Positions 14,466 through 27,408 of a stretch of 64,000 bases of DNA are shown here, piece after piece; the stretch's first letter is position 1; each line of letters starts with the position of its first letter. The DNA lies in the sequence record MW460245.1. One strand, given 5' to 3'. A program made the position numbers and the translations under genes. The notes beneath the pieces were generated by a model. The model was not told the DNA's origin and made no database searches. It worked only from the letters and a program-made list of their open reading frames with translations.

Positions 14466-17096
14466 ATGCAAATCACCCTGACAACGGCCGGCATTGCATT
14501 GCTGGCCGCACAAACCGGCCCTGTCGTGGTCGATAGAGCAGTATTTGGTGACGGCTATGGTTACACGCCGTCGCCTTCTGATACGAACATTCACGGTAAC
14601 CCAGTGCTGACACTGGTACCGAACGAGCCGCTCGCGCTGCCGAACAACCTGTACGAGTACACGCTGTTGCTTGATGCACAGGCTGGTCCGTTCGGCTTCG
14701 GCGAGATCGGGTACTTCGTCGGCAACACCTTGTTCGCTATTGCTGTCTCCACGCAGCTCATCGAAAAGGAGAGCGCCAACAATTCCTTCATGCGTATTGA
14801 TGCCTACCTGTTGATCCAGGGGCAGAACTACGACATGTGGATCAACAGCGTACCTGCGAACAACGAATTCCGGGTCGCAGTGTTGCAGTCGGTTGACCAA
14901 TTGCCGTTGCCGCGTGATGCGACGCCCAACACGTACATCACGCAGGCTGGTAACTCTTACGAAGCATCGTTCGCGTACACCGATCGTGGGCAGCTCTGGT
15001 CGTTCTCCGAATACAACTTCATGATCGAAACGCCGATCCTTGAGGTTACAGAGAACTCGATCTCGTTCGATCGGAACGTCCTGACGGAAGAGCTCAAGCA
15101 GAAGCTTACTCCTTCCTACTACGGTCAGTCACTGGCCCAGGTGTCACGTGGTGCGCAGGCTGGTTCGTGTCGTCTTATCGATGCGCTAGTGTTCAGCGGT
15201 CCCTACGCTGTCATCTCTTTCCGGACGGAATTCAGTACGCTCCCGAAGGTTGGCGACATGGTGTCGATGTATGGGCGTAACCGTGCACCTGTTGTCCAGC
15301 CGAACTATGTACTGCCTCCGGCAACGAAGACCACACTCGGTGGTGTGATTGTTGGCCTTGGCCTGGACGTCAACGTCGATGGCGTTGTGAATGCCAAGGT
15401 GCGTAGCGTTGCAGGTCGCGACGGCGATGTGGTGCTCACGACTTCGGATATCACCGACATCGCAAAGGTAGCAAAGACGAACAAGTACGGTGACCTGGAT
15501 GATCTGCCTCAGCCGTATGTGCTGCCGAATGCAACGAAGACAACGTTGGGTGGTATCAAGGTAGGCTCCAATCTGACAGTGCAGCCTGACGGTACTCTCA
15601 GCGTTGACACTTCGAACCTCGGTGGCGTTAAAACTGTTGACGGTCAGCAGCCTGATGCAGGTGGTAACGTTGTCGTGAAGCTGACTGATCCGTCGCTACC
15701 TACGACTCAGCCTGGGGCGATGGTGGCCGATAGTGGAGCTACAAGCGGCTTGCTGCAGGTCAAGACGCTCTATGCTCTCGATAACACGCTCGACATTCAG
15801 ACTTCGAACATGAAGCCTGACGGTACTCCTGGTCCCGGTGCACCGAACGTCGTTGGTCTTCGGATCAAACCGGGTGCAGTGGTAACGCGGATCAATACCC
15901 AGACTCCCGATGCTTCTGGGCTGGTGAACCTCAACATCTCTGACGAGAACACGACTAGCGGTGTGTCGATTGTCGGCTCGAAGCCGATGACCGTGAAGCG
16001 TATCGCCCAAGGTGATGGTATCACCATCGGTCCTGACGCTAACGGCAACCTGCAAATTTCTGCCATTCCTATTGCAGGTCTCATAAAGACGGTCAATAGC
16101 CAACCCCCTGACATCCAAGGGAACATAGACGTTTCGATAACGAATAACGTCCGTGACACGCCAGCGGATTCTGTAGGGTTGGCGCTTGGCACGAATCCAA
16201 TGGGGCGTTCAGTCATTGCAAAGATCCGTTCTGCGTCGTCTGCTCTGAAGGTAGGCCTCAATGCCGATTCGAATGTTGAGCTTAGCCTTACAGGTGTGGT
16301 GGCAACCGTTAATGGAACAGCGCCTAACACCAACGGTAATGTCAATGTCCAGCTGAATGACATAGGTGGTACCGGTGCAAAGTCTTGGATTTATCCGGGG
16401 TTGAAAACCACACTGCGGCAATTCAGTGTTGGGCCAGACATGACGGTATCACCTCAAGCAGGCGGTGAGTATCAGATCGCTATTGCCAAGGGAGCATTCG
16501 TAAAGACCATCAACGGTAAGACACCTCTTAGCAGCACAGGAGATTTTGCTGGTGTAGTCACGTCAGTTAATGGCAATGCACCTGACATTAACGGCAACGT
16601 TATAGCAAAGCTTCCTGCAATTCAGTTTGAGTTCGGTAATAACGGCCAAGATCAATCACGAGGCAAGGATATGGGCTCGTGGTTCATGGCAGATTCTAAT
16701 AGAGGTGGTTGGCAGACCTTTAATGGGATGGCTTGGACCCAAAATGCAGACGGAACGTTCCAATTGCTGGACGGCACAGGTCAGTACCTAGTATCCTACG
16801 GGGCTAAGATTCTCACAGATCAAGGCAACGCTGACACATTTGACCTACCTGCTCAGATGGTTGTGTCCTGCATGTCTAACATGGCAGTTCCTTTCCCGAG
16901 CGTGTACCAGTACGCGGTGCAGTATTTCCCCGATTTCAAGATTGCAAGCGGTGTGGCAGTCAATGGTGCTATAGGTTATATGTCGGCTACAGGTATTATG
17001 GCAGCCCCAGTAGCGTTGGGATTCGCGAAGGTCCTTGGAGGTAGTGGCAAGGCTCTTATGCTACAAGGTTACTGTACCATGATTAAGATCGGCTAA
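14466..17096 (+). CDS. Tail fibre protein 2 (paralogous anchor domain plus repeats)
   Basis: N-terminal ~270 aa clearly homologous to the 2601 fibre (FRVAVLQSVDQLP..RDATPN.Y); ATKTTLGG and V.TVNGxxPDxxGNV repeats. Confidence 0.85.
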   Translation: MQITLTTAGIALLAAQTGPVVVDRAVFGDGYGYTPSPSDTNIHGNPVLTLVPNEPLALPNNLYEYTLLLDAQAGPFGFGEIGYFVGNTLFAIAVSTQLIEKESANNSFMRIDAYLLIQGQNYDMWINSVPANNEFRVAVLQSVDQLPLPRDATPNTYITQAGNSYEASFAYTDRGQLWSFSEYNFMIETPILEVTENSISFDRNVLTEELKQKLTPSYYGQSLAQVSRGAQAGSCRLIDALVFSGPYAVISFRTEFSTLPKVGDMVSMYGRNRAPVVQPNYVLPPATKTTLGGVIVGLGLDVNVDGVVNAKVRSVAGRDGDVVLTTSDITDIAKVAKTNKYGDLDDLPQPYVLPNATKTTLGGIKVGSNLTVQPDGTLSVDTSNLGGVKTVDGQQPDAGGNVVVKLTDPSLPTTQPGAMVADSGATSGLLQVKTLYALDNTLDIQTSNMKPDGTPGPGAPNVVGLRIKPGAVVTRINTQTPDASGLVNLNISDENTTSGVSIVGSKPMTVKRIAQGDGITIGPDANGNLQISAIPIAGLIKTVNSQPPDIQGNIDVSITNNVRDTPADSVGLALGTNPMGRSVIAKIRSASSALKVGLNADSNVELSLTGVVATVNGTAPNTNGNVNVQLNDIGGTGAKSWIYPGLKTTLRQFSVGPDMTVSPQAGGEYQIAIAKGAFVKTINGKTPLSSTGDFAGVVTSVNGNAPDINGNVIAKLPAIQFEFGNNGQDQSRGKDMGSWFMADSNRGGWQTFNGMAWTQNADGTFQLLDGTGQYLVSYGAKILTDQGNADTFDLPAQMVVSCMSNMAVPFPSVYQYAVQYFPDFKIASGVAVNGAIGYMSATGIMAAPVALGFAKVLGGSGKALMLQGYCTMIKIG

Positions 17097-17595: not shown

Positions 17596-19431
17596 ATGGA
17601 TCCACTCTTTTATTACCCGGTGACACTTCACCGTGATATGCAAGCCTCCGATGTGTTGGCTTCCACGACCATCCGTCTTCCTGTCCAGCAAAACATCACC
17701 GACTTGGTGATGACGCTGGTGGATGGTGAAGGTCCGAAGGCTGACCAAGCGATGTACCTGTGGGACAGCTTCAAATGGCAGATGGTTCTCCCGTATATCG
17801 ACGTGTGTGAGTCGGTGGTACGTGGTGACCTCATCCACATCTACTACGCCCTTTCGCAGGACGTATCGTCTCTCCCTGAAGGCAGCCTTGTCTACAAGAA
17901 CGGTATCCCGTATGAGGGGACCGTACTGACTGCATCCTCGAATGCAGTGTGGACAGTTCGGCAGCCTGCTGCGTTGGCATCTGGTACCGTTCAGTCGGTG
18001 AACCACAAACTACCAGATGCTAAGGGCGATGTCGAGATAGGCATCCCTGATATCCCTGGACTCGAACAAGCGTTGATCGATGCAGGGAAGGTCAAGACGG
18101 TCAACATGCAGCAGCCTGACGCTAACGGTAACGTCACGACGGCTGTTGATTCGACTGATGCGACGCTCGGTGTTTCGCTGGTGCTCGACACTGGCGTTAC
18201 GAGCGGTAAGGCAACGATTAAGAAGCTGGTGCCTGGGACTGGCATCCAGCTGACTCAATCAGCGGACAGCAAATCGGTAACCATCGCATCGACTGGGGCT
18301 CTGACTTCGTTGATGTCAGTCGGTACTGGTAACTCATTGGTGAAGGATGACGGCAGCACGTCGCACGTCCCGCAGATCCGTTCGCTGGCTCAAGGTCCTG
18401 GTATCACCATCGTCCTGAACGCTGACCAGAGCACTCTGACGACGTCCTGGGATCCGTACGCTGCTAAGACGAACCAGCTGGGTGCTGTCAAAGTGCCGAA
18501 TGGTGGTGGTCTTGCTATTGCCGTTGATGGTGCCCTGACCTCTGCGCCTCCTACTGCGACCACGATTGGTTCGGTTAAGGCTGGTACAGGGGTGACGATT
18601 GATCCTGATGGTACGCTGAACGTTACGGCACTTGGTGGCGTTACGTCAGTCGATGGTCAGAAGGGTGATGTCATCGTTAAGGCGGTCGATACGTCCACGC
18701 TGAGCGGTAATTCGCTTGTATCTGATAGCGGGGCAACGACTGGTATCATCAAGGTGAAACGCCTTGTAGCTGGTACTGGCGTAACGCTGTCCGACGATCC
18801 GAACGGTAACCTGAAGATCGATACGGCTGCTACTGGCGGCGGTGTGATGTCGCTTACTGGTGGTACAGGTGGGGCAAAGCTGACTGGTGATATCCGACTC
18901 ATCGCTGGTCCTGCTATCAGCATTTCTTCCCTCGGTCAGGACATCCAGATTAGCGGTACTGGTGTCGAGGAAGCTCCGAACGATACGAACACCTACGTTC
19001 GTGGCCAGATGAAGTGGATCGTTGCACCTCCGCTCGACAAGGCCATCACGTCGGTAGATGCTGCTACAGGTACTGGCAGTGTCATACCGTTGGTGATGCC
19101 GAATCCGCCAGCCAACCATGCAGTCATCAAATCGCTGGTTGCTGGTAACAACGTCACCATCACTGACAACAACGCAGGTATTCTGACGATTGCTGCATCG
19201 TTGCCGAACGGTACGGTGGCTACGGTGCAAGGTGTTCCGCCTGACAACACTGGTAACGTGACGCTCACGCCGCAAGTGCTGAATGCTCTCGACAAGCGTG
19301 GTGATGCGATGGCTGGACAACTGGACATGGCAGCGCATGTGCTGACGGGCCTTGTCGATCCTGTGAATCCGACCGACGCCGTGAACCTGCGCTCGATAAG
19401 CTCCATCGTAATCGACAACGGTACCTTCTGA
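17596..19431 (+). CDS. Tail fibre protein (repeat-rich)
   Basis: ATG 17596 after GAGGTG; VxSVNxxxPDAxG and K.LVAGTG(V/I)TL repeats; EEAPNDTNTYVRG; DPVNPTDAVN motif. Confidence 0.8.
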   Translation: MDPLFYYPVTLHRDMQASDVLASTTIRLPVQQNITDLVMTLVDGEGPKADQAMYLWDSFKWQMVLPYIDVCESVVRGDLIHIYYALSQDVSSLPEGSLVYKNGIPYEGTVLTASSNAVWTVRQPAALASGTVQSVNHKLPDAKGDVEIGIPDIPGLEQALIDAGKVKTVNMQQPDANGNVTTAVDSTDATLGVSLVLDTGVTSGKATIKKLVPGTGIQLTQSADSKSVTIASTGALTSLMSVGTGNSLVKDDGSTSHVPQIRSLAQGPGITIVLNADQSTLTTSWDPYAAKTNQLGAVKVPNGGGLAIAVDGALTSAPPTATTIGSVKAGTGVTIDPDGTLNVTALGGVTSVDGQKGDVIVKAVDTSTLSGNSLVSDSGATTGIIKVKRLVAGTGVTLSDDPNGNLKIDTAATGGGVMSLTGGTGGAKLTGDIRLIAGPAISISSLGQDIQISGTGVEEAPNDTNTYVRGQMKWIVAPPLDKAITSVDAATGTGSVIPLVMPNPPANHAVIKSLVAGNNVTITDNNAGILTIAASLPNGTVATVQGVPPDNTGNVTLTPQVLNALDKRGDAMAGQLDMAAHVLTGLVDPVNPTDAVNLRSISSIVIDNGTF

Positions 19432-19443
19432 AGCGAGTAGACC

Positions 19444-20778
19444 ATGCCAACTATCAAGGTTAACATACCAATCCAGCTGTATCGAAGTGCAACACCCGGT
19501 ACGACGCCTCCTGCTGTCAACATGCTCGAAGGCGCGCTCGCCATCAACATGGCAGACAGGAAGCTTTTCTTCAAGGACAACACAGGGGCTGTGAACCAGA
19601 TCGGGGTGGCACGCTCTGAACTGGCGAAGGTCGCGTTCAGCGGCCAGTACGCAGACCTGATCGGTGCTCCGGGTCCTGGTGGTTACACCCTTCCAATTGC
19701 TACGGCCACTACGCTTGGTGGTGTGAAGGCAGGCGGTATGGGGATCGCTATTAGCGGCGCAGACGGCACGATCTCGAATACTGGCATACTGAAGATTCAA
19801 GGTGATACGAAGGTCCCTAAGTCTCCAGATGCAACAGGGCTCGCTACGCTGAGCAGCACCGACTTCAACATTCCTATTGACCTGATGACAGGCCCCTCCG
19901 GGACGATCCTGTCGAAGTACATCCCGCAGGTTGAGTCTGGTCTCCACTGGCAAGGTAATTGGGACGCAACTGCCAACAACCCACAGCTTCTGGATGGCGG
20001 TAAGTTGGGACCTGCGCCAGGCACGCAGCTTGCGAACGGTTCCTACTATATCGTATCGAAGGCTGGTAACACGCCTTTGGACGGCATCACTACATGGACA
20101 GTAGGTGACTGGGCGCTGGTTTCGAACGGTGTATGGACGCGTATCGCCAATGCAGGTTCGACGGTCACGTCGGTGAACAAGAAGACTGGTGACGTAACGT
20201 TGACTGCAACGGATATCACGGGTTTTGCCAAGGTAGCAACGACTGGTCAATACAGCGACCTGCTTGGCATACCGGCAGCCTACGTTCTGCCTGCGGCAAC
20301 GACGACAGCCCTCGGTGGCGTGAAGATCGGCACGAATCCTGCAGGTGACGCACCGTCAGCGACCCTGGCAAAGGTCGCGATAAGCGGCGACTACAACGAC
20401 CTGGCAAATCGCCCCAGTAATCCTGATACGGCTCGCATCGTGTCGAATATCAGGGGCGTGCCAACGATCATAGATGAGGAGTTCTATCTCTTCACTGAGA
20501 CGGTTACGTTCCAAACGAACTTCACCGGATCGCAGGCGCGGTGCAAATACCAAAGTGGTCAGAGCGCAACGGTTACCATTCGTCGGTATACCGATGCTTT
20601 GCCTGCAGGTGAGGACGTAGGGACCATCTTCTTTGATGGTACCGGCAAAGGGACATTCACGTCGATCATCCAGACACCGACGTTCAACGCAGGTGACCAG
20701 CTTTCCTACAAGTTCACGAACGCTACCAACCTGACGCTTGCAAATATCGCGATGCGCGGTCTCTACAGTGCGGTCTAA
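19444..20778 (+). CDS. Tail fibre protein with Mtd_N-like N-terminus
   Basis: IQLYRSATPGTTPP....EGALAINMADRKLFFKD; LAKVAxSGxYxDL repeats; WQGNWDA...NGSYYIVS..G...GDW domain. Confidence 0.8.
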   Translation: MPTIKVNIPIQLYRSATPGTTPPAVNMLEGALAINMADRKLFFKDNTGAVNQIGVARSELAKVAFSGQYADLIGAPGPGGYTLPIATATTLGGVKAGGMGIAISGADGTISNTGILKIQGDTKVPKSPDATGLATLSSTDFNIPIDLMTGPSGTILSKYIPQVESGLHWQGNWDATANNPQLLDGGKLGPAPGTQLANGSYYIVSKAGNTPLDGITTWTVGDWALVSNGVWTRIANAGSTVTSVNKKTGDVTLTATDITGFAKVATTGQYSDLLGIPAAYVLPAATTTALGGVKIGTNPAGDAPSATLAKVAISGDYNDLANRPSNPDTARIVSNIRGVPTIIDEEFYLFTETVTFQTNFTGSQARCKYQSGQSATVTIRRYTDALPAGEDVGTIFFDGTGKGTFTSIIQTPTFNAGDQLSYKFTNATNLTLANIAMRGLYSAV

Positions 20779-20795: not shown

Positions 20796-21932
20796 ATGGC
20801 AGCACGACAATTCGTGGTCGCAGCGGAGAGCTTCGACATATATTCGAACGGGAACCTCTCAACAGACTACCCGTGGTTCATAACCAACGCGGCCCTCACG
20901 CCGCAAATCAACATCAACGCCGGTGCGTTCAACCAAGGCGCGCTGACGATGCCGACGGTTGGTGCACCTGCAGCTTTGACGTCAGGTGCTGAGTATCAGT
21001 TCCCAAGCACCATGCAGCTCCTTCGAGGAAGCACGCTGGCTGGTACCAAGTCCCTGTTCGCTTTCAGCGGATGGCTGAACGTCAACAACATGGGCAACGG
21101 CAACGGTACGTTGCTTGGCCTCGGTAGCACGCTGAACAGCGGTGTTGCCTACCCGCTGCTGAACATTAGCCAGAGTGCCACGTCTGGTTTGAACCTGCAA
21201 TTCGTGACGAACATCAACAGTCCGACTAGCACGCCGTTCAACTTCAACCTGGCGCTAAACACGTATTACTGGATCACGCTTGCATTCAGCTTCGAAGGGA
21301 CTGCGGCTGGCAGTGGTAGCCTGAAGGCATCGTACTTCGTCAACGATACGCCGCTGCTACAGAATCAGCAGATTGCATGGACTTCGGATATCTTCATTCA
21401 GGGCCAGCCTGCGAACCGTCTCAAGCTGTACGGTGCGAACTTCATCAACTACTTCTGGGATGACTGGGTTATCCAGTGCGTGAGCAGCGCTGATCCCGAA
21501 TGGCCTGCACCTGCTACCGTTCAGCCTGATGTGCTGCCGCATATCCCGGCGCGACATATCCAGGTCTATTCGGCGGTCGGACCTGGTTCGCACGCTGAAT
21601 GGCAATCAGACGCAGGTGAACCGAACTGGCAAGCCGCAACTGATCCTACCGGATTGAAGTACGTGGTAGCGAATGACCTGGGACTCCGGGATACGTACAA
21701 GTGGAGCGGACCGGCAATGAACGACATCCGAGGCGTGGTGTTGCGCAGCGCGTCGCAACGATACCAGAACGTGATAGGTGTATCCCAGCCTCAGGGCGCC
21801 ACTGACGTAAAGCAGCCGACGAAGGTTGGTAATGGGCCCTCGCACGCTATTAGCGTCCTCGAAGACGACGGCACCAATCAATGGACAAGTGCAACTCTGG
21901 CAGCCGCTGAATTCGGCTTGCTGTCCAAGTAA
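20796..21932 (+). CDS. LamG/concanavalin-like virion protein, paralog A1
   Basis: ESFDIY N-terminus, YYWITL..., WDDW, NWQ, W..A C-terminal pattern shared by four paralogs. Confidence 0.6.
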   Translation: MAARQFVVAAESFDIYSNGNLSTDYPWFITNAALTPQININAGAFNQGALTMPTVGAPAALTSGAEYQFPSTMQLLRGSTLAGTKSLFAFSGWLNVNNMGNGNGTLLGLGSTLNSGVAYPLLNISQSATSGLNLQFVTNINSPTSTPFNFNLALNTYYWITLAFSFEGTAAGSGSLKASYFVNDTPLLQNQQIAWTSDIFIQGQPANRLKLYGANFINYFWDDWVIQCVSSADPEWPAPATVQPDVLPHIPARHIQVYSAVGPGSHAEWQSDAGEPNWQAATDPTGLKYVVANDLGLRDTYKWSGPAMNDIRGVVLRSASQRYQNVIGVSQPQGATDVKQPTKVGNGPSHAISVLEDDGTNQWTSATLAAAEFGLLSK

Positions 21933-21943
21933 TAGGAGAGAAC

Positions 21944-24343
21944 ATGACTATTCCATACATGCAGGGTTTCGAGACTATTCTCGATGACTCTGACTTCCGG
22001 GCCCAAGGCTGGCAAGCGCCTGCAGCATCGACCATGCCTGTCGTAACGCCTCCGTCCATAACGCCTATGCAAGGTCGTTCCTTGAGAACGCTGCCTCCTT
22101 ATAACTCTGACCTCGCAGCAGGGGACGGTGGTAACATATATGTACCTGGGGCATACAACACAGGTATCACTGTTAACCAAGCTTGGAAAGCAGGTGGCTT
22201 CTCTTTCGGTTTCACTGGTAAGTGGAACGACCCCAACAACCGTTATGCATTTGCACAAGGTCAGATCCTTGGGGCGTCCGCGTTTAACAATGGTCAATTC
22301 TGTTTTGACGGCACCCTGTACTGGGCTATCCGAGCTACTATAGTCATAGGTGGTACGCCAGTTCTGACGCTGGCTAATAGCCCGGACCTGATAAACTGGA
22401 CGGTGTTCGCCAATCAGCCTCCGGGAGCTCTGACTGCAAACCATTCGCTTTCTAGCCCAAGTCCGGGCCAGCTTGCTATCGTCCATATTACGTCCGGTAC
22501 GCCTAGCGCTGGGAACATTTCGCCTGTAGTCTATTACCTTGACAGGGCAGGTGGTAACTGGACAACCCTCATGCCGGATGCTGTACCGACTACCACAACG
22601 GGTGCAACAGGCAACGTGGCAGGCTACGTAGGGGCTACGGGGAACCCTGCGTTCCCTCACGTGATGTATTATGGGTACAACTCGTCCAACAATGGATTTT
22701 CTGCCTTGCTGGTAGGGAACCTTGCTACAGGTATGACGAGAGTAGCAACACTGGGTGGTTCGGCAGCCGGTTGGACTGTAGGCGTTAACCAGATCAAGGT
22801 TCAGGACGGTGTCATATGTGTTCTGGCTGGACGCCACGGATCTGCTCCTACCATGTGGTCTGCTAAGGCCAACGATCCTGCGCTCAACACTACTGCTGCC
22901 TGGTCAGTGGCTTTGATGAACATTGCAACGCAAGGGCCTGTTACTGACATAGCGTACCATCAAGCCTCAGGCTTGTGGGTAGCTGGCGCAGTGACAAGCA
23001 CTACGGCAACATCAGGTATCTATACTACACCTGCCGCAGGTGGAGCAGGTTCTGCTATAGCACCTTTGGGTGGTCCTGCGTCAAACAGTTTGACAAGCTT
23101 TCCAGCACCTCCCAATGTACCTATGACCGTGCGGTCCACAGATACAGGGATATCGAACGTCTACGTGGTCAAAAACGTTGTGTATGCGTTCTCTGGAAGC
23201 AACGGCAATAACGCGAACGCGACAGGTGCGATCATGACCTCGACCGACGGCGTAACGTACACTCCGCAGAAGCGCATAATGCCTTTGGGCGCTAACTTCA
23301 AATCGGGGTATGCAGGATCTTGGCGTTCTGTTTATTGGACTGGGTCTCAGTATGTCATGTGTACTGCCAACCCTAACCCAGTTAATAACGTCACGCTCAA
23401 CGCCAACTTCATTATAGTGTCGCCTGACCTTGCCTCAGACTACGAGTGCAAGTACGCGTCTGAAGGGGTCGAAATTGGTGGGATTACCACTAACGGTGGC
23501 AGCACTGGACTTGTTGTAGCGACTGCTGCGCCTACGGCAGGTACGTTTACCCAAGCATCCGCACCTGGAGGTGCCCTTCAGTTCTATTCTGCTTCGCCTG
23601 CGTCGAATCTCAGAAACGTAGGTCTGGTTACCAATGGAGGCGGTTGGTATCTTCAGGCGGCACCGCAGCCTGCAACAGGTTTGATATCTGCGGAGTGGGT
23701 GGCACGGGCTACGGCCACGCCAAATACCTTCGTGGTTGACCTGTACATTAACAACGCGCTTGTCGGTACTGGTACTCCTTTGTTGTTGGGTTCAAGCCAG
23801 GCTGACGTAACCTCGTTGTTCCTGATTCAGGTGGATCGATTCGGTAGATTGACTGCATTCGATGACATTACCTTTACCTTGTTGGATGGTAAAGGGTTGC
23901 AGGGTCCGCTTGGTCCTATCAACCTGATCTCGCGCGCATTCAACCAGGACGTTCAGGATCAGTGGGTACCTAATGGAGCGGCAACGAACGTTCAGGCAGT
24001 GACCCAAAAAGGCCTGTCGTCTCGCAACGACCGCTTTGTGTCATCTACGAACGCAGGTGATGAGGACAAATACGCAAGCACGACGCCTATTCCTGCAGGT
24101 TACACTGCGAAGGCGGTTATGCTGGAGGGATACTTTGCACGTACCTCTACCACCAACCCTGTAGTGCAGCTATCAATTGAGAGTGGCGCGGCTAACGCTC
24201 GAGTCTCCAGCGGTCAGGTCAACATAAACTCTCAGAATCCGACCTACGTGGCAGTGATCTCTGACATCGATCCTGCAACGGGCAAACCGTGGACCAACGC
24301 AGCAATTGCGGCGGCACGGGCAGTACCGACCCACATCTCGTAA
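21944..24343 (+). CDS. LamG-like virion protein paralog A2 with large central insert
   Basis: Same termini as A1/A3/A4 (QGFETI; FDDI; DPATGKPWT); insert with NSPDLINW, TSTDGVTY, VSPDL Asp-box-like motifs. Confidence 0.6.
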   Translation: MTIPYMQGFETILDDSDFRAQGWQAPAASTMPVVTPPSITPMQGRSLRTLPPYNSDLAAGDGGNIYVPGAYNTGITVNQAWKAGGFSFGFTGKWNDPNNRYAFAQGQILGASAFNNGQFCFDGTLYWAIRATIVIGGTPVLTLANSPDLINWTVFANQPPGALTANHSLSSPSPGQLAIVHITSGTPSAGNISPVVYYLDRAGGNWTTLMPDAVPTTTTGATGNVAGYVGATGNPAFPHVMYYGYNSSNNGFSALLVGNLATGMTRVATLGGSAAGWTVGVNQIKVQDGVICVLAGRHGSAPTMWSAKANDPALNTTAAWSVALMNIATQGPVTDIAYHQASGLWVAGAVTSTTATSGIYTTPAAGGAGSAIAPLGGPASNSLTSFPAPPNVPMTVRSTDTGISNVYVVKNVVYAFSGSNGNNANATGAIMTSTDGVTYTPQKRIMPLGANFKSGYAGSWRSVYWTGSQYVMCTANPNPVNNVTLNANFIIVSPDLASDYECKYASEGVEIGGITTNGGSTGLVVATAAPTAGTFTQASAPGGALQFYSASPASNLRNVGLVTNGGGWYLQAAPQPATGLISAEWVARATATPNTFVVDLYINNALVGTGTPLLLGSSQADVTSLFLIQVDRFGRLTAFDDITFTLLDGKGLQGPLGPINLISRAFNQDVQDQWVPNGAATNVQAVTQKGLSSRNDRFVSSTNAGDEDKYASTTPIPAGYTAKAVMLEGYFARTSTTNPVVQLSIESGAANARVSSGQVNINSQNPTYVAVISDIDPATGKPWTNAAIAAARAVPTHIS

Positions 24344-24352
24344 GGAGCAGCT

Positions 24353-24715
24353 ATGGCAGGCAATCCTGTAAAGGGGCAGGCCGTAGCTGAAACCGTCCTT
24401 GTGGTTCAGTCACCAGCGGCAAAGGCTCAGGCCTTAACGGAAGTGCTGCTAGTGGCACAAGGAACGGCTGGTACAGCTAGGGCACTGAATGAAACCGTAT
24501 TGCTCGCCGCACCTCGCAACATCCAGAGCAGAGGTTTGTTCATGGAGGTGTTGGGGAGCGGTAGCATCACAAACAAGGTCCGACAGACGACCATGGAGGT
24601 ATTAGGCGGCGTGGCGTTCGAGACGCGAAGTGCTTCGCTGTTCATGGAAGTGCTAGGCGCTCCAGATACACCTCCGAAACCAATCGGTCAGAAGGTCACG
24701 TGGTTCAACACCTAA
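24353..24715 (+). CDS. Small repeat protein (xxEVL repeats)
   Basis: About six ~12-13 aa repeats: AETVLV, LTEVLL, NETVLL, FMEVLG, TMEVLG, FMEVLG. Confidence 0.7.
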   Translation: MAGNPVKGQAVAETVLVVQSPAAKAQALTEVLLVAQGTAGTARALNETVLLAAPRNIQSRGLFMEVLGSGSITNKVRQTTMEVLGGVAFETRSASLFMEVLGAPDTPPKPIGQKVTWFNT

Positions 24716-24724
24716 GGAGTTGAA

Positions 24725-25015
24725 ATGAGAGTAGAACAGGTGGACGATATCATCGTTGTGCATGAGTTCAATGCCGACGAATGGATGGCGTTGGACCTTT
24801 CGCAGTATCCCAAGGAGTGTACGATAAACTTCGCTGAAAACACCCTGACGGCTTCGCCGGCAGTCATTGCGTTAAACACGGAAGGGCGCATGATGAATAT
24901 GGTGCAGCGAATCGAGTATGTGCAGACCTATTACGAGAACGGTTTCAGCGTCTCTCCGATGCAGAGGTCGTTCGTTCAGCTTCTTCCGGTGCAATCGGTA
25001 ACGCAGGGGGCATAA
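24725..25015 (+). CDS. Hypothetical protein, 96 aa
   Basis: AGGAG RBS; coupled to the next gene. Confidence 0.7.
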   Translation: MRVEQVDDIIVVHEFNADEWMALDLSQYPKECTINFAENTLTASPAVIALNTEGRMMNMVQRIEYVQTYYENGFSVSPMQRSFVQLLPVQSVTQGA

Positions 25016-26034
25016 TGTTCCAGTTCTGCGATTCAATGGATGCCTACGCACGGACAGAAGACATCCTCGGTAAATGGGTCTACAACTCTGGACTGTCCTT
25101 CGAGGCAGGCGCTGGAAAATACGGAGGTGTAGCGCTATCAGGGACGCAAGGCTACGGACGAGTAGGATTGGCAGGCACCTCAATTCCGGCTGGTGTGCCT
25201 ACCTACGTAGCAGGCTGGTGGAAGTTTACGAGTGGTCTCAACGCTCTGACATCCGGCGTAGGGATGGTGGTGATCAACACTAGTATGGTGCTCCATATCA
25301 CCAGCGGTGGTACTATAGGTGTGTACGACACCAATAGAAACCTGAAAGGTCAAGGGTCAAGGTCCATATCTGATAGCGCTTATCACTGGATCGAGGCAGC
25401 CATAACCGTAGACGGGGCTAACTCTAAGGTGACAGTGTATGTCGATGGTCTCAAGGACATAGACGGCACCTTCGACCTGGGGGTAGCTGCTGCACCTCAA
25501 ACGATGGTAGGTCTTGGAGTTGGTACTGTCGTTAGCAAGGCGTACATGGATGACGTGATTGTGTGGGATAACCAATCGGGTGACTCATTCACGTCGTTCC
25601 CGATTGGTATCAAACGGATTGGACTTCTGAATCCGAATGGGCCAGGAGCGTCTACTAAGTTCGTGTCCTCAGATAGCACAAAGGCTAACTGGCAAGTAGC
25701 AAGTCAGCCTTACGTGCCTGTCCTGCCTGCGGTAGTTGCGACCCTGTCGGATGCAGGCATAGACAACATTGATCTGTATACGGCGAATGCCTTAGGCTTC
25801 ACGCCAACAGGTGATCTCAATGTAGTGGTCAGCATCTCTGGATCAAACCCCTCAGGTGACGGTGCACACAAGCTTGGGGCAGTGGTTCAGAGCAATGCAT
25901 TGCAGAACGCAGGTCTTCGACAAAATCTTGGTTCAACGCCGCTGACGAGACAGACCATGTTCATGTACGACCCTGCGACGAACCCCTGGACGCTGGCTTC
26001 AGTCAACAACATTCAAATCGGTATGAAGGACTAA
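25015..26034 (+). CDS. LamG-like virion protein paralog A3
   Basis: FCDSMDAY, YVAGWWK, YHWIE, KVTVYVDG, MDDVIVWD, NWQVASQ, DPATNPWT. Confidence 0.65.
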   Translation: MFQFCDSMDAYARTEDILGKWVYNSGLSFEAGAGKYGGVALSGTQGYGRVGLAGTSIPAGVPTYVAGWWKFTSGLNALTSGVGMVVINTSMVLHITSGGTIGVYDTNRNLKGQGSRSISDSAYHWIEAAITVDGANSKVTVYVDGLKDIDGTFDLGVAAAPQTMVGLGVGTVVSKAYMDDVIVWDNQSGDSFTSFPIGIKRIGLLNPNGPGASTKFVSSDSTKANWQVASQPYVPVLPAVVATLSDAGIDNIDLYTANALGFTPTGDLNVVVSISGSNPSGDGAHKLGAVVQSNALQNAGLRQNLGSTPLTRQTMFMYDPATNPWTLASVNNIQIGMKD

Positions 26035-26036
26035 CC

Positions 26037-27080
26037 ATGGCTCATTTGTTCAGTGAAGGTTGGGACGTATATGGTGCCATCACAGATGTGATTGGTTGTG
26101 GTAAGTACCGTTGGGTTACCACACCTGCCGGTTCCAACCCAGGCTTTGGTCTGACGGCAGGCAAGTTCGGAGGCAGAGCATTGCTGTCTCTGACTGCAGG
26201 TTATGCAGCCACTATACGGTGCGACATGCCGAAACCGATTCCGTCAGGGAGCACCTTTTACGTAGCTGGCTGGTGGAAGCTTGCCTTCGGGGGTGGTAAA
26301 ACCACTGCTTCTCCCTACGCGCTAGTAGGAGTCAACGGCTTCAACATCATCTCGTATGATGGGCAGTACCTGACCTTGCGTAACGGGCAGGTAACAGCCC
26401 CTGTAGCAACTGGTACCACCTTCCTTGCAGATGGTTACCACTGGATCGAGGTATCGATCCAGCTTGCGGGTGCCAATTCCAAGGTCACGGCCTATGTCGA
26501 TGGTATCCAGCAGTTCAGTGGTACCTATAACCTAGGTAACCTGCCGGCTCAGGACATCCCTGTTGTGTATATCGGTACCGATTATGGAGTCGCAAACGGG
26601 TTGAATGCTCTGGATGATTTCATTATATGGGATTCGACGGGCGCCGACTTCAACACGTTCCCTATGGGACCACGTCGTATCGGTCTCATGAATCCTGCAG
26701 GTCCTGGAGACATGACGCAGTTCGTCTCGTCTACTGGAGCAGCTAACTGGCAAGTCGCGAGCCAAGCCTTTGGTAATACGCCGATACTTGCTGATGGTGG
26801 CACAGGCTTGTACGATCTCTACACGTATTCAGCACTGCCGTATGTACCGAAGACGACGGTCAATGCGGTAGTCGTCAACACACAAGCTCAGAACCCTGCA
26901 GCCGACGCGCAGCACTCTGTGATGAGCAGGATAAAGTCAGGAGGCGTGTTGGCCTCTGGGACGCCGAAGGTGTTGGTAGCGACGAACACCATCAATACTG
27001 ACGTTTTCACACGAGACCCCTCTGGCAATCCTTGGACGCTGGCTTCGTTGAACGCATCCCAGATAGGTTTTGGAGATTGA
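26037..27080 (+). CDS. LamG-like virion protein paralog A4
   Basis: Closely similar to A3 (YVAGWWK, YHWIE, KVTAYVDG, LDDFIIWD, NWQVASQ, DPSGNPWT). Confidence 0.65.
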   Translation: MAHLFSEGWDVYGAITDVIGCGKYRWVTTPAGSNPGFGLTAGKFGGRALLSLTAGYAATIRCDMPKPIPSGSTFYVAGWWKLAFGGGKTTASPYALVGVNGFNIISYDGQYLTLRNGQVTAPVATGTTFLADGYHWIEVSIQLAGANSKVTAYVDGIQQFSGTYNLGNLPAQDIPVVYIGTDYGVANGLNALDDFIIWDSTGADFNTFPMGPRRIGLMNPAGPGDMTQFVSSTGAANWQVASQAFGNTPILADGGTGLYDLYTYSALPYVPKTTVNAVVVNTQAQNPAADAQHSVMSRIKSGGVLASGTPKVLVATNTINTDVFTRDPSGNPWTLASLNASQIGFGD

Positions 27081-27081
27081 C

Positions 27082-27408
27082 ATGGCTACCTCAACCTCTC
27101 AGGTACAGAAGGTATATGCTGAGGTGATCGGTGGTGATCCAAACGCGGTGTCTACATCTTACGCGCAGAAGGTGTATGCAGAGGTCATCACTGGCAGCGT
27201 ATCTGTTGCCATAGTGTCAAAGAACTACACTGAGGCTATCACCGACTCGTCTATTGCGCCCAAAACTACCGTGTCAAAGGCGTATGCGGAGGCTACTACG
27301 GGGCTGGACGTATCACCTGCAACCGCGGTAGTGAAGCAATGGGTTGAGGTCATCACGGACCTTCCGAACGCGAAGCAACGGCGCAGCGTCTACGTACACA
27401 TTCATTGA
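27082..27408 (+). CDS. Small repeat protein (KVYAEVI repeats)
   Basis: Five repeats: QKVYAEVI x2, SKNYTEAI, SKAYAEAT, KQWVEVI. Confidence 0.7.
   Translation: MATSTSQVQKVYAEVIGGDPNAVSTSYAQKVYAEVITGSVSVAIVSKNYTEAITDSSIAPKTTVSKAYAEATTGLDVSPATAVVKQWVEVITDLPNAKQRRSVYVHIH

Follow-up and report, generated by a model that had tools for sequence, protein, structure and literature searches.

Two gene sets of Burkholderia phage BCSR5 belong to a widespread cassette that pairs a predicted jelly-roll protein with a small tandem-repeat protein

The genome of Burkholderia phage BCSR5 (MW460245.1), a 227-kb jumbo phage, was analysed in a window of 64,000 nucleotides, the whole stretch of DNA considered here, which is 100% identical to the record and in which positions 20,796 to 27,408 (184147-190759 of the record) hold seven genes, all labelled 'hypothetical protein' in GenBank. 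These genes are referred to as A1, A2, R1, x, A3, A4, and R2 (Table 1); their order and coordinates, as given in an earlier note made from the sequence of this DNA, were confirmed. Four of them encode proteins of one family (A), and a small repeat protein (R) follows each pair of A genes, again as the note had described. The two gene sets (A1-A2-R1 and A3-A4-R2) are two old instances of a widespread two-component cassette. The module is part of a long run of genes on one strand; neighbouring genes are at most 11 nt apart and a single pair shares 1 nt, and a promoter and terminator scan of the module found internal signals no more frequently than in shuffled sequence. The baseplate and sheath genes of BCSR5 lie further on and on the opposite strand. 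For R2, the list of open reading frames (ORFs) gives a TTG start at 27070 and GenBank an ATG at 27082, one base past the A4 stop; the latter was favoured because relatives begin at the equivalent Met-Ala-Thr.

Table 1. Features of the A-R module of BCSR5 and of the adjoining fibre genes, with positions in the window
Feature	Position	Strand	Length	Description
Fibre upstream of A1 (outermost)	14466..17096			phrog_9625
Fibre upstream of A1 (middle)	17596..19431			phrog_9625
Fibre upstream of A1 (nearest)	19444..20778	+	444 aa	phrog_9625, phrog_1699, Pfam Phage_head_fibr
A1	20796..21932	+	378 aa	divergent full-length member of the two-jelly-roll A family
A2	21944..24343	+	799 aa	A-family module at the C-terminus (~589-792) and ~500 extra residues
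R1	24353..24715	+	120 aa	six strand-like repeats in two subtypes of three, aromatic C-terminal tail
x	24725..25015	+	96 aa	position after R1 conserved
A3	25015..26034	+	339 aa	full-length A-family member, A4 paralogue
A4	26037..27080	+	347 aa	predicted concanavalin-A/LamG-like jelly roll (1 to ~200) and second beta domain (~205-347)
R2	27082..27408	+	108 aa	five repeats with 17-20 residue spacing
Collagen-like fibre after R2	27416..29203	+		Pfam Collagen E 2e-16; C-terminal domain of ~100 aa

The relationship among the A proteins was established by sequence and profile comparisons. All four match phrog_2448 in the PHROGs database (A3 with E 7.6e-16; A2 over residues 594-792 with E 4.4e-16). 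A3 and A4 share 38% identity in BLASTP (E 3e-59), and A1 and A4 share 23% over 370 aa (E 6e-7), with 301 columns of A1 aligned by hhalign. Against a family profile of about 340 positions built from 50 sequences, A4 (E 7.3e-103), A3 (E 4.6e-90), and A1 (E 3.6e-18) each matched end to end, residues 10-375 of A1 aligning with profile positions 6-345. The proposal that the four proteins form one family therefore stands at full length for A1, A3, and A4, whereas A2 carries the module together with about 500 additional residues. Residues 589-792 of A2 match profile positions 140-342 (40.6 bits), and its full length matches phrog_30887 (E 1.5e-106). Because the A2 homologues of phages BcepSauron and RSL1 match the profile from position 42 or 70 to 343, and because their first ~25 residues weakly fit the profile start, the extra residues of A2 look like an insertion into the A module or an extension of it. 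Residues 1 to ~585 of A2 (21944-23700) and the Sauron and RSL1 homologues contain about three Asp-box-like motifs, which hint at a possible propeller of the sialidase type; Pfam gave no BNR hit. The motifs that the earlier note had listed as shared by the A proteins correspond to invariant or near-invariant columns of the family (D10, D193-D194, N237, and W333-T334).

The A family is very large and widespread, and the cassette of BCSR5 is one instance of it rather than a feature specific to this phage. A profile search of 1.84 billion representative proteins retrieved 11,228 clusters (at 50% identity) with E<=1e-3 and 7,380 with E<=1e-10, and all but a handful of the 150 best hits are 320-375 aa long. 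A scan of a genome collection with a 13-sequence A alignment yielded three loci. Genomes of myo-, sipho-, and podophages contain members, as do prophages of Burkholderiales, Caulobacterales, and other groups; where their source annotations name them, they read 'hypothetical' or 'LamG-like jellyroll fold domain-containing protein'. No family was found in Pfam or NCBIfam for any of the seven module proteins (Pfam Laminin_G_3 matched A4 below threshold, at 20.2 bits against a cut-off of 27.6, and gave no match to A1, A2, or A3), and their matches in PHROGs are to families of unknown function only. No tail-fibre family of PHROGs or Pfam matches A1-A4 or R1-R2, and sequence and profile searches of the PDB with A4, A2, R1, and the family alignment returned nothing meaningful. 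In the literature on BcepSauron, BCSR5, RSL1, LamG tail-fibre proteins, and the cryo-electron microscopy (cryo-EM) of phiCbK, no description of these genes was found. The searches thus agree with the earlier note, in which the module was not recognised as described.

Two details on A genes deserve comment. In T7-like genomes (Autographiviridae), the A gene (7995-8984 of L003 and 6001-6990 of L009) lies close to the end of the genome, beyond the genes for terminase and lysis, and has no R-type ORF beside it; the position is unusual for a tail accessory gene. In Brevundimonas phage Gurke, the 'lectin-like domain protein' GURKE_03410 (L004 4916-6001) is glycine-rich and unrelated to the A family, the true member being the neighbouring 'hypothetical' GURKE_03400.

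The fold of the family was examined in an AlphaFold2 model of A4 built with 13 homologues, which consists of two beta domains (predicted local distance difference test score (pLDDT) of 88.5 and predicted template modelling score (pTM) of 0.88). Both this model and that of P0089, a natural fusion described below, are compact two-domain globules. According to the two models and the invariant columns, A-family proteins are predicted to be made of two beta-sandwich domains, with an invariant Asp-Asp strand and an Arg-Arg-Ile...Pro-x-Gly-x-Gly segment between the domains. The earlier suggestion of a LamG fold was supported by Foldseek for domain 1 (probability 1.0 against the PDB, with a template modelling score (TM) of at most 0.40 by query and ~0.5-0.61 by target), whereas domain 2 found no PDB partner. 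All PDB partners of A4 are concanavalin-A-like jelly rolls that cover the first domain only, namely calreticulin, Cip1, the carbohydrate-binding module (CBM) of AbnA, polysaccharide lyases, the lectin domain of the V. cholerae sialidase, and the N-subdomains of clostridial toxin Hc; the modelled domain 1 is thus predicted to have a concanavalin-A/LamG-like fold. Among the predicted viral structures of BFVD, A4 has full-length matches with TM 0.7-0.84 from phiCbK-like phages, Achromobacter phages AchV4 and Motura, VpV262, Serratia phage JS26, Casjensviridae of Providencia, Proteus, and Hafnia, and roseophages. Consecutive accessions among these matches suggest tandem arrays of A paralogues, and such an array was seen directly in the genes AchV4_0025-0027.

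The R proteins are defined by their repeats. In R1, the units are spaced by 17, 17, 18, 17, and 17 residues, and a chain of six such units was obtained in none of 20,000 shuffles. R1 and R2 gave no BLAST hit to each other and neither had a significant PHROG match, the shared repeat type being the sole link between them. Relatives were gathered by tblastn and by reading the ORFs adjoining A genes, and the repeat family was delimited as at least two units in tandem, each of 16-21 residues and with Glu/Gln, Val/Ala/Thr, and Ile/Val/Leu in this order as its core, as found in both R1 and R2. The 71 units so obtained were extracted with a pattern that requires the Glu/Gln anchor and limits the next two positions to small residue sets, so that the frequencies in these columns (Glu 89% and Gln 11% at the anchor, Val 73% at +1, and Ile, Val, or Leu 97% at +2) are not free measurements; in the unconstrained column -2, Tyr or Phe accounts for 62%. 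R1 and R2 were assigned to one repeat family because a protein of locus L021 joins R2-like and R1-like units in one chain, its R1-like part matching phrog_13560 (E 1e-5). R1 has a relative of the same 3+3 layout in BcepSauron_278 (37% identity), and ORF185 of RSL1 is also related. Most proteins of the R2 type have a short hydrophobic C-terminal tail with Cys-Thr as its last residues, and those of the R1 type have an aromatic one; R2 of BCSR5 is atypical, with no such Cys in its tail. Directly after BcepSauron_273, which shares 61% identity with A4, an unannotated 72-aa ORF of the R2 type with three repeats and a Cys-x-Cys-Thr end was found (L002 10041-10259). BcepSaruman has the same ORF region, and the tblastn hit falls in unannotated sequence in both GenBank records.

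An R-type ORF adjoins the A gene within a few bases at about 26 of 36 non-redundant A loci. This count comprises 24 loci flagged by an automated scan, minus L033 (a chance motif pair in a 1309-aa ORF), plus three recognised by eye (RSL1 ORF185, L022, and the fusion of L038). R-type ORFs directly follow A4-like genes in BcepSauron and Saruman, L006 (a 356-kb jumbo contig with the R-type ORF 3' of the A gene), L008, L010, L012-L019, and L040-L041; L010 and L012-L019 are contigs of ~5-45 kb, several of them from isolate genomes. In phiCbK, the 69-aa gp316, with three units ~17 residues apart, is encoded directly upstream of the A homologue, and in RSL1 the 85-aa ORF185, with four units, follows two A2-like genes. 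The A-R loci include jumbo myophages, phiCbK, and temperate siphophages resembling gene transfer agents (GTAs); L008 and L038 belong to the last group, being GTA-like tail modules on temperate siphophage contigs with DUF2460, BR0599, NlpC/P60, and Phage-tail_3. The idea that A has a dedicated small partner is thus borne out, as the adjacency is kept in very different phages and natural A::R fusions exist, and we conclude with high confidence that A and R are functionally linked.

The symmetry of the two BCSR5 sets had been overstated in their description as a duplicated three-gene module: apart from the lack of a BLAST hit between R1 and R2, A2 is enlarged, and BcepSauron has a fibre gene at the position of A3. 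In that phage, A1-A2-R1-x is retained, with BcepSauron_280 as the A1 orthologue in the same position, and a 668-aa fibre gene then replaces A3 before A4 and the 72-aa R2-type ORF. The claim that A3 and A4 remain similar at the DNA level holds barely: the collinear DNA matches amount to four short patches, and the aligned codons are 49% identical in nucleotides. A recent duplication of three genes was rejected given this divergence of A3 and A4, the difference between R1 and R2, and the different Sauron layout.

Natural fusions give a view of how A and R may meet. P0089 and P0161, which are 84% identical and come from independent samples, consist of a complete A module, one repeat, and a Cys-x-Cys-Thr tail. 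In the model of P0089 (pLDDT 86.6), the repeat forms a 13-residue strand (residues 379-391; mean pLDDT of 89 over the block 381-390), the conserved segment 226-240, which opens domain 2, is a 15-residue strand (largely coil in the model of A4, which has no R part), and the tail is disordered (pLDDT <50). From this model, we tentatively infer which strand pairs with which. Repeat blocks are also found on other proteins encoded beside an A gene. A fibre-like protein of 491 aa (L026) carries them at its N-terminus and a protein of 497 aa (L020) at its C-terminus, and in L030 and L036 they are followed by proline-rich tails; the block behaves like a docking module that can be moved between proteins. 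Proteins of ~245 aa are encoded right after the A gene in L025 (7048-7779) and L029 (7025-7783), with three R-type repeats at the C-terminus and a Cys-containing hydrophobic end, and their N-terminal part resembles a CBM-like jelly roll as judged by eye only. P0049 (351 aa), which joins a C-terminal part of A to an R-type end, was not used as evidence; its junction reads like an out-of-frame translation, and it is probably a gene-calling or sequencing artefact.

The number of repeats was compared with the number of A genes, which it broadly follows. Loci with a single A gene have two to four R units, most often three. Six units in two subtypes of three are present in the first set of BCSR5 (A1, A2, R1) and in that of BcepSauron, five in the second set of BCSR5 (A3, A4, R2), seven of two subtypes in L021 (two A genes), and 3+4 in the two R-type ORFs of L030 (two A genes). 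These numbers suggest about three R units per A type.

The cassette always occupies the distal end of the tail module, where it comes after a gene for host specificity or for a fibre and, in many cases, immediately before the lysis genes. In BCSR5, the three consecutive fibre proteins upstream of A1 share phrog_9625 segments and short repeats known from models of head and tail fibres, and they appear to be a paralogous set. The match of the nearest of them to phrog_1699 is to the N-terminal part of a long tail fibre distal subunit; its orthologue in BcepSauron is BcepSauron_281, annotated 'long tail fiber', and it has a weak C-terminal similarity (E 0.01) to the collagen-repeat fibre that follows R2 together with a 994-aa protein. 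Residues 471-589 of the collagen-repeat fibre match phrog_7049 and phrog_11585, and this end domain shares 40% identity with the C-terminus of the fibre upstream of the A-R pair in L008 (E 2e-6). The fibres of L008 and L038 match the same two families and the C-terminal end of phrog_11660, a profile of 1412 positions annotated as tail protein; gp317, a virion tail protein of phiCbK, likewise has 1412 aa. Since this C-terminal domain is shared by the fibres of BCSR5, L008, and L038, the recurring set comprises a fibre with the end domain, at least one A, and R. The module had been considered distinct from classical fibres. Because the cassette habitually adjoins fibre genes that share one C-terminal domain, it is more likely to work with fibres than instead of them.

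Evidence for presence in the virion comes from Achromobacter phage AchV4, of which AchV4_0025 and AchV4_0026 were detected in purified virions by liquid chromatography-tandem mass spectrometry (LC-MS/MS) with 22 and 14 peptides and coverages of 75% and 35.5%, respectively (PMC7996906 Table 1). The two proteins match the A profile with E 1.7e-19 and 1e-27, and AchV4_0027 is also an A-family member. AchV4_0021, a 7-kDa virion protein suspected of being R-like, was found not to be so.

On balance, we lean slightly towards an accessory tail adhesin system, in which A subunits would be joined by a strand-donating repeat adaptor, R. A is most likely a virion protein of ~340 residues with two jelly-roll domains, located at the distal tail beside the fibres and serving as the subunit that binds the host surface. 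R consists of tandem units of ~17-20 residues with a conserved strand core and an almost invariant Glu. Each unit may supply an additional beta strand to a single A subunit, probably beside the Arg-Arg-Ile...Pro-x-Gly-x-Gly segment that opens domain 2. One R chain could thereby tie several A subunits, and in two-gene sets two A paralogues, while its short hydrophobic C-terminal tail would be left free and anchor the assembly to another tail part. The analysis shows the family membership, the fold, the conserved neighbourhood, the natural fusions, and the presence of relatives in virions; we infer the direct binding of R to A by strand addition, the tail location in BCSR5, the binding of a glycan or receptor, and the stoichiometry. 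The lectin activity of A and the scaffold role of R, which the earlier note had proposed from sequence, are putative.

Several observations weigh against the adhesin system. The virion detection concerns relatives in AchV4 and not BCSR5 itself, and the phiCbK record marks the adjoining tail proteins as virion-associated but not the A homologue gp315 or the repeat protein gp316. About 10 of the 36 A loci have no R ORF, including those of T7-like podophages, Gurke, and AchV4, so that R is not obligatory for A. The relation between repeats and A genes has exceptions in RSL1 (four units for two A2-like genes) and L023 (three units for two A genes). In A, no sugar-binding residue pattern was recognised, the invariant residues of the LamG domain being core positions. 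The contact between A and R was read solely from the secondary-structure and confidence summary of one fusion model, in which the longer strand at 226-240 could stem instead from the deeper alignment used for P0089.

A more specific form of the strand-addition idea is possible, and we put it forward only tentatively. R would act as a strand-array staple, in which every unit contributes an edge strand to one A subunit, as a rule three units to an A type, and the subtypes (3+3 in R1) specify the place of each A paralogue. An R of 70-120 residues would then template a hetero-oligomeric adhesin cluster and tether it by the C-terminal tail to a fibre or the baseplate, and other phages would use the repeats to hang fibre or CBM cargo on A.

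Alternatively, A and R might be fibre assembly factors, comparable to gp38 and gp57A of T4 or Tfa of lambda, that are absent from the virion or substoichiometric in it. Their genes lie directly beside fibre genes, the usual site of such chaperones, R shares its small size and repetitive make-up with some oligomeric chaperones, and the phiCbK homologues are unflagged among flagged neighbours. However, this account is rather unlikely, as A-family proteins occur in the purified virions of AchV4, no chaperone family (Tfa, gp38, or gp57A type) was matched by the module proteins in Pfam, PHROGs, or NCBIfam, the fusions of repeats to fibre-like and CBM-like domains better fit a structural docking module, and arrays of diverging paralogues are typical of receptor-binding proteins. 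We give less credence to the notion that R does not bind A and forms a structure of its own, a beta-solenoid or a trimeric beta-spiral mini-fibre, the adjacency arising from both being tail accessory genes. Regular periods of 17-20 residues with alternating hydrophobic positions do resemble fibre-shaft repeats, a variable repeat number could set a length, and in L026 the repeats are at the N-terminus of a fibre-like protein. Because a single repeat fused to A (P0089 and P0161) and a 54-aa R protein with two repeats (L008) exist, both too short for a solenoid or shaft, a free-standing R is disfavoured; in addition, the fusion model shows its one repeat as a confidently predicted strand inside the A fold, and the A and R genes remain neighbours in myophages and siphophages alike, whichever of the two comes first.

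The structural neighbours of A4 also bring to mind enzymes, since the top matches include glucuronan lyase 2zzj, alginate lyase Aly36B, GH131, a beta-1,3-glucanase, and the transglycosylase Crh5, and the extra region of A2 has Asp-box-like motifs as in sialidase-type propellers. The A proteins would then be polysaccharide lyases or glucanases acting as depolymerases of capsule or exopolysaccharide. This is improbable in our view, because the TM values are modest (query at most 0.40, target at most 0.61) and the non-catalytic calreticulin, sialidase lectin domain, and toxin Hc match equally well, the family-invariant residues lie on the usual LamG core strands, and there is no glycoside hydrolase, lyase, or BNR match in Pfam. 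Least probable of all is a cassette placed on the capsid or neck, where it would form head fibres or whiskers, instead of at the tail tip. It is true that an upstream fibre passes the Pfam threshold for Phage_head_fibr, that 'head fiber' families of PHROGs match weakly, and that the BCSR5 block is on the opposite strand from the baseplate genes. The head-fibre match, however, is limited to a short repeat, one that many tail fibres have as well, and siphophage relatives place the cassette directly after the host-specificity (Phage-tail_3) and tail-tip genes and before lysis.

The accessory adhesin system can be compared with known phages and assemblies. AchV4 (vB_AchrS_AchV4, Casjensviridae) carries A proteins of the same family, the 352-aa protein having a BFVD TM of 0.72, as a tandem paralogue array (AchV4_0025-0027) that follows the fibre gene and closes the tail module. 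It differs from BCSR5 in that no R-type repeat ORF was found beside the A genes, and the proteins are known only as 'virion structural protein'. In the phiCbK pair, gp315 is like A (profile E 1.2e-62) and gp316 (phrog_13560) has three repeats with the ~17-residue period of R1; the pair is located after gp317 and before the endolysin, and homologues occur in Caulobacter and Brevundimonas phages. There, the order is R then A, with a single A gene, and both proteins are annotated as hypothetical. For a related jumbo phage, the Matilda preprint reports only a need for an active flagellum.

In T-even phages (gp37/gp38/gp57A), small accessory genes by the fibre gene add or assemble the receptor-binding tip, and a separate adhesin attaches to the fibre end. 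The likeness to A and R is one of analogy only, with no sequence or fold relation in Pfam, PHROGs, the PDB, or Foldseek; gp38 does not consist of two jelly rolls, and gp57A has a helical structure instead of repeated strands. Jelly-roll or CBM domains at the tail tip also serve glycan recognition in the baseplate decorations of siphophages, such as the accessory baseplate proteins of lactococcal phages and gp23 of mycobacteriophage TM4. The C-terminal receptor-binding domain of TM4 gp23 (PDB 9n6a) is matched by A4 in Foldseek (E 1.8e-7, TM 0.28-0.31) at the fold level only. Such decorations are domains of larger baseplate proteins, whereas A is a free protein of ~340 aa paired with a repeat adaptor. 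The proposed mechanism would resemble donor-strand complementation in chaperone-usher pili, where a short strand of one polypeptide completes or extends the sheet of another; there is no homology, and the donor in A and R would be a tandem strand array on a separate small protein.

Of the remaining genes, x is matched by BcepSauron_277 (95 aa; 33% identity, E 3e-5), and a Pfam search gave no family for it, with a sub-threshold helix-turn-helix match at most; it is uncertain whether x is part of the module. Small DUF3175-like proteins are encoded among the fibre genes of BCSR5 (29212-29739 and 33011-33298), BcepSauron (L002 5797-6309), and RSL1 (L005 9144-9914). In BCSR5 and RSL1, they have a long tail that is Lys/Pro-rich or acidic, and the RSL1 copy lies directly after the R-type gene.

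Jelly-roll receptor-binding modules on phage tails are known. The two-domain family, its tandem-strand partner, and their pairing were absent from the family libraries, solved structures, and papers searched. The bacteria that a phage can recognise are determined by its receptor-binding and accessory tail proteins, and much of this apparatus is unannotated. The A-R pair provides a two-gene annotation signature for the distal tail module and points to many small ORFs that are now missed, for example, in BcepSauron and Saruman. For structural biology, it offers a testable assembly principle, in which strands would be added from a repeat adaptor whose repeat number and subtype are matched to the number of A paralogues.

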